Source: Glycera tridactyla
Lineage: Eukaryota
DNA: 64,000 nucleotides
Direction of reading: 5' to 3'
Assembly: GCA_965644265.1 (NCBI GenBank)
Contig: OZ286471.1
Location: 43,958,001 to 44,022,000 of the forward strand
Made by a program: the position numbers and the translations under genes. Under the pieces are notes generated by a model. The model worked only from the letters and a program-made list of their open reading frames with translations, was not told the origin of the DNA and ran no database searches. The first letter of the stretch is position 1; every line of letters begins with the position of its first letter. Shown piece by piece: positions 3,914 through 14,679 of the stretch.

Positions 3914-4005
3914 CACTAAAGATCCATTTGAGTCCACAAGCACGCGATGCGCTGGCGAGGGTAGGAGGTTACCGAATAGAGCTTCGGGGAGACATACACA
4001 TCAAG
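3914..4005 (+). CDS. Guanylate cyclase internal exon (92 nt, phase 1-0)
   Basis: ttctttgtcgcag|CA CTA AAG ATC CAT...ATC AAG|gtaaaa. Encodes (P)LKIHLSPQARDALARVGGYRIELRGDIHIK, in frame with exon 1006-1104. Too short to appear in the ORF track. Confidence 0.93.
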
Positions 4006-5499
4006 GTAAAATAACCCCGTCAAAAGCAGCTACTGGTTTGAAGGTCTCATGTAACTCTACATAACACATGATTGAACACCATTTGTCATTAGTAACAGTA
4101 GTAGTGGTAGTGGTAGTGGTGTCCTTTTATTTTTGTGACCAGGAAATTTAAATACTTATGTACGATGGTGATTTTTTCAGAACTTGTATAATAATCCACA
4201 AGACACACCACAGAGGATAATTCTACAATATTAAAGGTTGTATATATGATGAGCTTCTCCCGCCCCTGCACGAGGCTATTAGTCGCACCTATTGATATTG
4301 ATCGTACCTACTATCAGGTACAACTGAGGCGAGTAATGTATTCTTGCAGATTCAGTTCCAATATTTTGCAGTTGGTTCATTATAAACTTATTACCCTGGT
4401 TGTCGGATGAGACATGAGATGCATCCAAACACGGCAGTGCAAAATTACACTATCCTTCACTCCTTTACAAAAAAATTATATGAAGTTTTACTCCCAGGTT
4501 TCAACTTATTCTGTCAAATAGTAAAATCCATCATAATTGGTGCATTCCCAAATGTGTGAATATTTTGCAATCTTAAACTCTCGTCAAACTGCCAATTTGG
4601 TTTCTGGAAGAGTTGCTTTACCGGGGCATGTATTTCCTGACTTTAAGATCATTTCTACAGTTTTGCTGATCAGTCATGGTTTACTTTGAAGCACGCCTTG
4701 AATGAGTCTATGATAAAAGACATAAAAGTAAATGATTCGTTTTTCACTGTCTGAGATGGAGAATTCAGAATCCTTGGATCAATCCTGGGGCCACTTCTAT
4801 TGTTTTTTTTTTCGTTAGCCATCTACCAAGTGTTCTTTTTTAAATGTATATGCTGAGGATATGGCTGTTTATGTGAATGAGAAAGATGGAAATAAGTCGT
4901 CGACAGACTCAGCCATGAGCTGGAATGATTGCATAGTTGTTTTCAGGCAATGGAGTTAACAGCCAATGTGATGTTCTTCGGAGAACAACTGCAGGTGAAT
5001 GATAATCATTATGGATTAAGGTGTAGCAATTACTTCATCTACGTCTTCCTTTAAGATGCTCATTATCAGTTCCATGTGACGAATACTATCATTACTTCCA
5101 CAATTAGTGATGATGCAATCGTCACCATTGATAATACTTCCCACCAGAATCTCAACCTATCACTATATAGTATTTCTTATGTCCTATATCTTTGGTACGA
5201 TGCGTTGCTATGTGAGCATATCATAAGACTTTGGTCAAATGCTACCATAATCTGCAATCATGCTAAATCGTAACACTCTATACTCAACCTGAAGTGGTTG
5301 TCAGTCATCCCTATAATAGGCATTGATTCACAGATGTGACCATCTCAGGCCGGTGTTGGATACGTATCAGTAATTGCTCAGAGACAAAACATTTATTCAT
5401 GTTAACTTTTGTCTTTCCTGGAACATAGACAATAGATGTCTACTTCTAACTACTTGCACTATTACAGCTACTACTGCTACTGCTACTACTACTACATTC

Positions 5500-7480
5500 A
5501 CCAGGAACGTATTATCGATGCTGAAAATGCAGCAAATGGTAGTATAAATGTAGATTTCACCTTTGATGAAGTCAAGAAAGTCATCGATAAGGCAAAGCAT
5601 CGCAAGGCGGTCGGATTAGATGGTGTCCTGGCGGAAGCCCTAAAAAATGAAACCACTATCAATATCCTGATGCGGTTATTCAATGTTTGTCTCAGGAAAC
5701 GGCAGGTACCCTCTATGTGCTTCTTTGGAATGATTAATCCAATTCCAAAGTCTAGTACGGCAGATCCAAGGGTGCCTCTAAACTACCGGGGGTCAGTCTG
5801 CTACCAGTGGTCAGCAAGCAGTACACAGCTGTCATCTCATCAAGACTATCTGATTTTCTAGAAAGTAACAACAGCCTATCAAACGAACAAAATGGTTTCC
5901 GCCCCAAAAGATTTTGTCTCGACCACGTGTACACATTAAGCAGCATTTGCAGATCCCGCCAAGAGTTGAAACTAGAAACCTTCCTCACTTTTATTGATTT
6001 TTCTAAAGCCTTCGATTTCTTAACACACGAACTTCTATTTTCTAAATTACTAAAGAAAAGTATCAATGGGGATATATACCATGGAATAATAGAGATTTCT
6101 TATCGAAACCCTGAAAGCTGTGTACAGCTTGATGGCCACTTGTCAGACTGGTTCCCCACCATCTCGGGAGTAAGACAAGGTGATTCCCTGAGCCCTCTCT
6201 TGTTCGCCCTGTATATATAGATGACCTTGTGTCGATGATTGATGAATGTGATGCCGGGATCAAGCTAGGGGGTCATCAGCTCTCGTTACTTCTATATGCC
6301 GATGACATCGTGTTATTACCTGATTGTGCACAGAATGCAGAAAACAATTAAATATTATGTCTAAATGGTGTAGTCAGTGGAAAATGGCTATCAACGCCAA
6401 GAAATCGCAAATTGTTCATGTTAAAAAGTCCACAACGACCAAGATGTTCAACACCCCTATATTGTTGTAATCAAGAGTTATCATACGGTCCAAATTACAA
6501 GTACTTGGGGATTTTTAAAATGAACATATGTCCTTTCAGAACGCAGCAGATGCCTTAGCAGCGGCAGGTTCAAGATCCTTCAGCAGAATTTTATCGATAT
6601 TTAAGAGATTAAAAAATATGGGGATCAACACATACACAACTTTGTACGACACGTACGTTGTTTCAATTTTGAACTACGCTTCAGGGGTTTGAGGGTATAA
6701 GGAATTTAATGACTCCAGAGTTTTACAAAACCGCATTGTCCGTTTCTATCTGGGAGTCCACAAATTCACACCTGTCTCAAGCTCCCAGATAGAAATGGAC
6801 TGGTTGGACATAAAATTCAAATGCTGGATCGAAATGGCTACGCTATTTAACAGAATTGTGAAAATGGATCCACACAGGCTCCCATATATTGTACTCAAGT
6901 GGGAACTCTCTCTGAACCTTGGCGGCTGGGTCTCGGAACTCAAAAATATTCTTTGTTATGCAGGGTTGGATGTAACTTTCGCTGAGCTGCACACTATTGA
7001 TCTAGATGTACTCTCAGTCAGATTAATGAAACTTAACCGTGACAAACTGTGACTGGAGGCTTCTGCAAAAAGCGAGTTATGCACGTTTCTGAAAATACAT
7101 GACCCCACAGTTGTGAGAACACTTGTTGATTCTAATCTGAGCAGGCCAGATCGTAGTAATCTGGTGAAATTCATGTCAGGAGTACTACCCCTTGCACGGG
7201 GTGTTTCAAAGGAGTACCTATTGAAAACAGTGCTGTGACTCAGGTTTGGTGAAGGATGAGGAGCACTTCGTCCTAAGATGTGAGGCAGTATCCTTGGAGA
7301 GAGCAGATCTCTTAAATGACCTAAATATAATCGATGATTCTATTGTCTTGAATGATATGTCAGATATTCTCCGTATACTCAAACCAGATACAATTGCTTG
7401 TTTCGGGAGGGGTCACACTGCCATGTTGGAAAAAGGAAGAATTGTATTTTCGTCTGAGACTAACATTATCCAGTAATACT
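5500..7480 (+). mobile_element. 5'-truncated, decayed non-LTR retrotransposon (LINE) ORF2 with reverse transcriptase, inside the cyclase intron
   Basis: Motifs KAVGLDG, NYRG-ISL, QNGFRP, FIDFSKAFD, GVRQGDSLSPLLF, LLYADD (about 6295) and C-terminal DEEHFVLRC. Broken by several frameshifts and stops. Clade not determined. Confidence 0.92.
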
Positions 7481-12710: not shown

Positions 12711-13655
12711 AATTTCAAAAAATGGAATCCGGATCGCATATCAGGTCAGGTATTAGAGATCTATGATACATGCCTGATACATGTCAGAAGAAACTTAAGA
12801 CTGGAAATTATATGTGGACTCGATCAGGCAGTTTCAGAACAGATGTGAAGGATCTGTATCGATGTCAGTTATACTAGCGTCGACCTTTCTATGCAGCAGT
12901 ATCTTCTAATTCCTATAGGCAAAAGTAGTCCCCTCGCGATTGGTGTGATTGGCGACACAAGTCAGATTACCCACCTTCACCCCAAGATAAACAGATGCTT
13001 CCTGTCCTTCTCATGGCACTGATCTCCCCTCATTCCAATATCACCCGGGAAATGTACTGTTTTGAAATATTCAATTTACACATATTTCTGGAAAAGATTC
13101 ATATAAGTATCTATTTGTACATACTGTCAAACACCAACCTAACCAAACCAAAATTAGCAATAGTTTTTGTAAAGAAACCTCTCACTGATCTTCATTTACA
13201 CTAATACTACTGTACTTGACTTGTCATTTCCATGTACCAGGCAACTTACAACTGCATAACATAAGAGAAAGGGGAATATAATCCACCTGTATCGACCTCC
13301 ATTGCATTCCCGGAATTCAATCAGGTTGCTATCTTGAATTTCCTTGACATGATAGCTACAGAAGATCATTTGCACACGACATCACTTGGCTTGGTGTAAA
13401 TCATCTTTTGTATTGGAATTATTATATAGATAAGGCAGGGACTGATAGACATCATTGTGTGACCTAAATTTCGTCTTCCAAATGTAAAATATTACGTGGT
13501 AAATTAATTGTGTATGATTTCGGTATTAGCAAGAAACAAGAATGATAGAAAATGATAATTTTGGAGGCACTGTGTCCATTGATTCCCGAAACTATGGCAT
13601 GCAAAAAAGGAACGATCCGAAATAACAGGACGATATTTCTGTTTTTCTATTATAG

Positions 13656-13775
13656 GGAAAAGGTACAATGAGAACGTATTTCCTTGAAACACGTGACAAA
13701 AAGGTGGCAGCAATGACAGAAAAGGAATTGGAAGCCTCCAACCTGCTTGAAACCCCATGTAAGAGTCCACAGTGA
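13656..13775 (+). CDS. Candidate cyclase last exon C (39 aa)
   Basis: tttctgtttttctattatag|GGA AAA GGT ACA ATG AGA ACG TAT TTC CTT..., phase 0. Encodes GKGTMRTYFLETRDKKVAAMTEKELEASNLLETPCKSPQ*. AATAAA at 13936-13941. Confidence 0.85.
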   Translation, partial: GKGTMRTYFLETRDKKVAAMTEKELEASNLLETPCKSPQ

Positions 13776-14679
13776 CAAACCTTGGCCAACTTATCAGACC
13801 TCTCGTTTGTTTACATTGGGCTTGACACCTCAACTTCAGCGCGGACGCCTCGTGAGTGTGACGACCATTTTTGGCTTTTGTGGGGAATGCGAATCTCTTC
13901 ACATTTTTAATCGCGAGAACCACAACAAATGGTGGAATAAACTCACATTGGATTAGCTTTTCTTAGCTGTGATGATCTGGATTCAAGTATTGAATACCTC
14001 CTACAATTCAGGATGGCTGGACTACTGTGGAAAGCCTAAAGTTGAAGACACTAGTCCCGGTTGGTTTTCGCTTGATTAAAGAGCTGGTGTTTTGTTGCTG
14101 ATAAGCAAGTAGCAAAGACTTGCCAGATAGGTGGGCTTGCAACATCGTATGGGTCGCAGTGACCAACTGATTGCACGATGGCAAAGTCCAAGTAAAATTT
14201 CTAATTAATGGAATATTCTCAGAGGGTGTGGCATTTTCCACATGAAGGATGAATAGACAGTGGCATGTATGGAACTGATGACGGAGATGATTATGCTTTC
14301 ATGGCTGCTGTCACATTCATCAAGGCTCATTATTTAGGAGGTGGCCCATCCACTCAGCGCATTCACTTCTGCAATAGGACATATGCATTGATGGTGTGCC
14401 TGATACTGGAATGAGCCTGTTGTGATCAAACAAACAGAAATATTCTCAGGAGTAGACAGTTGCATATACAATGATTGCCCGGTATCAAGAATTAGATGTA
14501 CCTAACTGTTATTTGCTATAATGATTAATCCCCACCATAGTTGTTGAGATTGTTACAATTGTTGAAGCTACCACCACCACCACCAACAGCACCAACACCT
14601 ACACGAACGCTATCATCACAACCACCCACAAAACCATCACTACATCTGTGGGCCATAACACCATAGGCAACAGAAACAC

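Follow-up and report, generated by a model that had tools for sequence, protein, structure and literature searches.

Three homologous candidate last exons downstream of a shared penultimate exon in an annelid guanylate cyclase gene

At the 3' end of a guanylate cyclase gene of the annelid Glycera tridactyla, the last coding exon appears to be present as three anciently duplicated and since diverged copies, all of which follow a single shared exon. This 3' end is contained in a stretch of 64,000 nucleotides (GenBank assembly GCA_965644265.1, contig OZ286471.1, positions 43,958,001 to 44,022,000 of the forward strand), which was analysed at its full length and is referred to below as the window; all positions are counted from its first letter. 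From the genomic sequence we lean towards the view that at least two of the copies, here named A, B and C, are used as alternative endings of one gene. The use of all three, which would give three enzymes with an identical active site, a closing strand of their own and different tails, is a more tentative proposition that we regard as rather doubtful. Four lines of evidence favour one gene with several maintained last-exon copies: the coherent strand, phase and order of the exons, the completion of the PF00211 cyclase profile by each copy, the pattern of codon positions between B and C, and the length of the open frames. The shared exons and the candidate last exons are the following, with slashes in sequences marking exon boundaries:

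1005-1104, plus strand: cyclase catalytic-domain exon (PF00211, 53.5 bits, profile positions 108-142 of 183; also found by tblastn)
3914-4005, plus strand: shared penultimate coding exon, encoding P-LKIHLSPQARDALARVGGYRIELRGDIHIK, with donor AAG/GTAAAA
8493-8660, plus strand: copy A, GLDRTMRTFWL and a 44-residue tail, 55 residues in all; acceptor tatttcag/G, stop codon TGA at 8658-8660
8722-8919, plus strand: copy B, GKGALTTYWL and a 55-residue tail, 65 residues in all; stop codon TAG at 8917-8919
13656-13775, plus strand: copy C, GKGTMRTYFL and a 29-residue tail, 39 residues in all; stop codon TGA at 13773-13775

Two exons upstream of the copies establish which kind of gene this is. The first, whose acceptor is uncertain by a few bases, ends in phase 1 at a donor GT at 1105 (GTAAGT), and the second joins it in frame, with the split codon completed to CCA for the proline that precedes the shared peptide. 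This second exon ends at a moderate donor site, the GTAAAA at 4005/4006, and its last codon specifies the lysine preceding the GKG turn of the cyclase domain. The closest solved structure to it is that of ANP receptor 1, at residues 980-1009, and it is because of this best structural match that we assign the gene to the receptor-type cyclases. Judged solely from the best matches of its C-terminal exons, namely ANP receptor 1 and fragments resembling natriuretic peptide receptors (NPR) or Gyc76C, the gene is a receptor-type, natriuretic-peptide-receptor-like guanylate cyclase of an annelid with its 3' end in the window. Its start and upstream domains lie before position 1, so that about 75 C-terminal residues are all that the window holds of the cyclase domain. 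Among the catalytic parts, these include the GDTVN.ASRMES segment with its Asn/Arg pair and the lysine before the GKG turn, the metal-binding and base-specifying residues being encoded upstream of the window.

Downstream of the shared exon, and on the same strand, follow the three acceptors, each consisting of a polypyrimidine tract and AG/G and all in phase 0; the strongest tract of the three belongs to C. The frames behind them all start with the beta-strand that closes the cyclase fold. A preliminary description of this DNA had given the extent of the shared exon, the acceptors at 8493, 8722 and 13656, the peptides with their lengths and the AATAAA signal behind C, and our re-reading of the window bears out every one of these. 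It had further stated that no other cyclase exons lie between the copies and that the tails are unrelated, and in both points our results agree with it: motif scans, a position-specific scoring matrix and tblastn with the two shared exons detect no further cyclase exon in the window, and outside the strand there is no nucleotide similarity between the copies except for 11 nucleotides at the acceptors of A and B.

The strand itself is highly distinctive in its surroundings. A regular expression for the strand motif, applied to all six frames of the window, matches at A, B and C only, as compared with a mean of 0.03 matches in 200 shuffles. The scoring matrix, built from 117 related cyclase fragments, gives C a score of 30.8 and B a score of 29.9, followed by 10.9 for the next best site in the window and 7.9 for A in an ungapped comparison; with a window mean of -26.5 and a standard deviation of 5.9, both B and C stand about 10 standard deviations above the mean. 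On the minus strand, positions 59125-59154 also match B; no acceptor accompanies this match, which we attribute to chance. The open frames between B and C are without a Pfam match, and positions 1-16000 are without an Rfam match. The copies thus form a tandem series of homologous exons that agree in strand and phase and are not interrupted by a constitutive exon, as would be expected of alternative last exons derived from tandem exon duplication.

Does each of the copies complete the catalytic domain? The shared exon 3914-4005 by itself has no Pfam match. When it is extended by the initial 15 residues of one of the copies, the joined peptides match PF00211 with 17.7 bits for A, 24.2 for B and 26.2 for C, and each of the alignments ends at profile position 182 of 183. 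The joins to B and C thereby exceed the curated cut-off of 21.9 bits; the join to A, a fragment of 45 residues, falls below it with the same end point. The lysine at the end of the shared exon, which stands before GK(G/K), is presumably the equivalent of K593 in the beta subunit of soluble guanylate cyclase (sGC), as placed on what we take to be the sGC beta1 sequence. The beta1 version of the closing segment is, on the same assumption, GKKEPMQVWFL; as this too has 11 residues, the additional residue in A would, if that reading is correct, not necessarily be disabling. In sGC-beta, K593 is the lysine that stabilizes the triphosphate, as is K1065 in adenylyl cyclase (PMC3591389). With the intron placed directly behind the last catalytic residue, what is left for the alternative exons to add would be just a structural strand and a tail. 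All catalytic residues would accordingly be encoded in the shared exons, each alternative exon would supply the closing beta-strand together with a tail of its own, and every variant would retain an identical active site.

Comparison of the copies with one another suggests that they are old. Over the 10 comparable codons, B and C have identical bases in 8 of 10 cases at the first codon position, in 8 at the second and in 1 at the third (Fisher p = 4e-4). For A and C the corresponding counts are suggestive at 8, 6 and 3 of 10 (p = 0.056), with the arginine encoded by CGC in one and AGA in the other, and for A and B they are 6, 6 and 3 of 10. The saturation of third positions together with the retention of the peptide suggests that the copies are old and that each has been under constraint at the protein level for most of that time. 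The comparison points to long purifying selection on both B and C, with the qualification that it covers 10 codons and that the same pattern could arise if the copies had diverged inside separate genes. The frames are also long for this DNA. Open runs that follow a random AG in the window have a median length of 12 codons, and those of at least 55, at least 65 and at least 39 codons, the lengths of A, B and C, occur at frequencies of 0.076, 0.052 and 0.146. By codon usage, the tail of B lies above the null expectation (p ~0.014) on a score that is crude and weak, having been trained on two innexin exons only.

The three tails differ in character as well as in sequence. That of A, with 44 residues, is rich in Ser, Thr and Pro and contains an RRTS site. 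The 55 residues of the B tail are strongly basic (isoelectric point 11.4) and end in -SDF, the simple pattern of a class I PDZ ligand; a single-sequence AlphaFold2 prediction renders B as a long helix over residues 22-62, with a predicted local distance difference test score of up to 97. The C tail, 29 residues long, is acidic and Lys-containing and ends in TPCKSPQ. From such patterns we infer, and only infer, a kinase-type site in A and a PDZ-type end in B. Alignments that ran from end to end and suggested that the tails correspond to those of the Gyc76C type (via ..QKREV.. and ..RRSPK.. in BLAST) were discarded, as the tails score no higher than shuffled tails against a profile of that family. 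A word search with the 101-residue open frame around B returned no relatives of 56-177 residues.

The sequence between and behind the coding exons bears on how the copies could be reached by the splicing and polyadenylation machinery, and contains the following features:

5436-7500, plus strand: remnant of a reverse transcriptase like that of a long interspersed nuclear element (LINE), in the last intron and in the same orientation as the gene (PF00078 RVT_1, 63.5 bits on 5756-6217)
8214-8375, without strand: assembly gap (N), intronic, in an imperfect (GTA/GTG/GCA)n repeat, 118 nucleotides before acceptor A
9722-9727, plus strand: ATTAAA, first variant poly(A) signal after B, 802 nucleotides past the stop codon of B
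13936-13941, plus strand: canonical AATAAA of C, 160 nucleotides after the stop codon of C

The gap at 8214-8375 is bordered on its left and right by one imperfect (GTA/GTG/GCA)n repeat in unchanged orientation, which fits an unresolved repeat within continuous sequence, and as the gap is intronic, it leaves the reading frame unaffected. The three-copy arrangement is moreover independent of any gap, since A, B and C are all on one contig (8376-26516). A search for RNA pairing of the docking and selector type, between the start of the intron and the sequence preceding each copy, yields microsatellite complementarity near A alone and nothing for B and C. The repeats concerned, (GTA/GTG)n at 4090-4120 and TACTACTAC just upstream of acceptor A (8060-8430), are complementary and could loop the intron; repeats of this kind are common throughout the window. 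A 3' transduction by the LINE was considered as an origin of A and B and is unsupported, as no poly(A) tract follows B and the LINE ends near 7690.

How, then, could the copies be used? The acceptors of A and B are 229 nucleotides apart, and 61 nucleotides separate the stop codon of A from acceptor B. Because of this proximity, and because neither has a canonical AATAAA within 1.5 kb, A and B would behave as competing acceptors of one unit. The stop codon TAG of B directly abuts a donor-like GTAATA (8920-8925), which is similar in strength to the real donor GTAAAA at 4006. We therefore envisage that the donor at 4005/4006 may be spliced to any one of the acceptors of A (8493), of B (8722) and of C (13656), with A and B forming a proximal unit of competing acceptors and C a distal exon that has a canonical poly(A) signal. 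The proximal unit would either be polyadenylated before C is reached, or be spliced onwards from TAG/GTAATA into C. In the latter case it would act as a cassette that carries stop codons, and all forms would use the poly(A) signal at 13936; the stop codon of B would be too near the junction TAG/GTAATA for nonsense-mediated decay, which would thus be escaped. In either case the products would be up to three enzymes that combine a common catalytic core with different regulatory or targeting tails. The preliminary description had seen here one gene with mutually exclusive last exons. This view is supported in part: the sequence fits several maintained copies in one gene, and mutually exclusive use of all three is a conjecture. 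A and B look like competing acceptors of one unit or a stop-carrying cassette rather than independent last exons.

Searches for relatives provide an evolutionary frame for the gene. The 30-residue shared exon is a short query for a protein search and retrieves two irrelevant matches only, one of them from a metagenome. A word search with the spliced core and copy C (103 residues) retrieves 3956 cyclase fragments, the best of which is 73% identical; none of them is from the same species and none has a matching tail. Informative for the intron is Ridgeia piscesae (JAODUO010000136.1), in which about 2.1 kb separates the last exons of two convergent receptor guanylate cyclase genes, and both genes have the same K/GKG phase-0 intron as the gene described here. 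The position of this intron is thus old and shared, and the possession of multiple last exons is not general. A search of the literature yielded nothing relevant on the peptides or on last-exon variants of cyclases. As an observation in its own right, the JGI metagenome contig Ga0136654_1163102 contains, at 297-575, an open reading frame of 92 residues in which the end of a cyclase penultimate exon, LDKLGGYILEPRGTVTIKV, occurs three times head to tail; there, the exon end and donor region have been copied in tandem.

A number of observations weigh against the use of several endings. A has no GKG turn, with GLDR and one extra residue in its place, and scores 6-8 bits lower than B and C in the completed profile, and a G-K/R-G turn is present in 117 of the 120 related fragments listed. 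Neither A nor B has a canonical AATAAA within 1.5 kb, the first occurring at 10471, 1551 nucleotides past B. By codon usage, the tails of A and C fall within the null and are indistinguishable from open non-coding sequence, and in protein searches none of the three tails has a detectable relative. Among fragments of 57-180 residues, no protein is 100% identical to the shared core, and among the 120 fragments listed there is no pair with the same core and a different strand. The two cyclase genes of Ridgeia, finally, have one last exon each. A rival reading is that just one last exon is working, most likely C, with the others being either decaying relics of tandem duplication or recently copied 3' fragments of paralogous cyclase genes, and we consider this a possible, if unlikely, state of affairs. 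C outranks the other two in strand score and in polypyrimidine tract and has the canonical poly(A) signal; A has lost the turn and gained a residue; the tails of A and C cannot be told from non-coding sequence, and tail homologs are missing. Since the K/GKG intron is common to other annelid cyclase genes, the last exon of any paralog would be in phase by descent alone, and copying from a paralog would explain a divergence that took place under selection and yet allow for the copies being dead at present. However, in relics old enough to have saturated third positions and erased flanks, the strand peptide, the acceptor and the open frame would be expected to have decayed as well, whereas each of the three copies retains all of these. 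If the three frames are independent, runs of at least 39-65 codons would stay open together with a probability of about 6e-4. Around A and B there is, furthermore, no sign of a copied or transduced block, as judged by the lack of a poly(A) tract and of a repeat match elsewhere in the window, and the tail of B looks coding both in its codon usage and in its predicted helix.

A different kind of objection arises from the assembly. The gene is interrupted by runs of N at 1456-1586 and 8214-8375, such that exon 1005-1104, exon 3914-4005 and the three copies are on three contigs, and the contig carrying A, B and C might not truly follow that of the shared exon, in which case the copies would stem from one or more other cyclase genes. 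We consider such a scaffolding artefact improbable, as the second gap is entered from either end by the same imperfect repeat in the same orientation, and as all exons agree with one another in order, strand and phase; even with a wrong join, three copies without an intervening cyclase exon would remain on one contig. That the copies are chance open frames with a resemblance to the cyclase strand, a notion that draws on the common motif having just 10-11 residues, is effectively refuted: as compared with the 0.03 matches expected, there are three, each with the position, strand and phase required of a last exon, and the matrix scores of B and C are far above the window mean. Maintained alternative endings of a single gene, at least two in number, therefore remain the reading that we prefer for this locus.

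Outside the cyclase gene, the window contains two tandem innexin genes on the plus strand, at 39275-40426 and 51953-53005 (PF00876 on their relatives). The best named matches of the first are from the annelids Paralvinella (51%), Capitella (48%) and Lamellibrachia (47%), and the best match overall of this innexin, at 63% identity, is on ctg9730_53x_l of ENA ERZ26052378; the protein collection thus holds nothing closely related to the species. The contig, 1.36 Mb long and from a distant annelid, carries three innexins about 40 kb apart and no cyclase exon within some 14 kb upstream of the first of them. The open reading frames called on this contig contain many in-frame TGA codons, evidently the result of a metagenome annotation with a code in which TGA is a sense codon, and most of its annotated genes are artefacts. 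A tandem repeat of about 3 kb at 17291-20326 is open for about 1000 codons in several frames on both strands, with His/Asn/Thr-rich translations on the plus strand and Val/Gly/Cys-rich ones on the minus strand; a shorter related block is found at 14.5-15.1 kb. The repeat is probably a minisatellite rather than a gene.

What would the alternative endings mean for the enzyme? In the few receptor guanylate cyclases studied in this respect, targeting, scaffolding and desensitization are governed by the C-terminal tail. Alternative terminal exons that are homologous to one another are well known from other genes. If all three copies were in use, the tails would be a phospho-regulated one (A), a basic helix with a PDZ-type -SDF end (B) and a short acidic one (C). 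If true, the gene would be without precedent among known cyclases in exchanging its terminal strand and tail by means of mutually exclusive terminal exons, and it would represent a compact way to send one source of cyclic GMP to different places or to put it under different controls. The position of the intron, exactly after the last catalytic residue, makes for an unusually clean module boundary.

Among known systems, the one closest in protein is mammalian GC-A (natriuretic peptide receptor A, NPR1), a multi-exon gene in which the cyclase domain is spread over exons 16-22 and which is alternatively spliced (PMC10665444). The described NPR-A isoforms alter exon 9, the 9-nucleotide exon 5a or part of exon 4, and thus the kinase-like or extracellular regions, and are inactive and dominant-negative (PMC10665444). 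The shared exon of the Glycera gene aligns to ANP receptor 1 at residues 980-1009, a likeness that denotes a best match and not orthology, and no described NPR-A isoform swaps the last strand and the tail. To the invertebrate receptor cyclases resembling Gyc76C (..AIQKREV/DLGELPPLFCRPRRSPK..), which have long C-terminal extensions, the shared exon is about 60% identical over the core, SPQ.RDAL...GGY. In that group, in which the function of the C-terminal tail matters, the exon with the strand is internal and is followed by extension exons, and an extension exon of the Gyc76C type is not found in the window. Closest in architecture are genes whose alternative last exons arose by tandem exon duplication, such as exons 9a-9d of tropomyosin and the 3' exons of lola and mod(mdg4) in Drosophila. 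With these the Glycera gene shares tandem homologous terminal coding exons in the same phase, in which the same element is re-encoded before the sequences diverge; it differs from them in being a receptor guanylate cyclase, in that a single beta-strand is what is repeated, and in that two of the copies lie 61 nucleotides apart without a poly(A) signal of their own.

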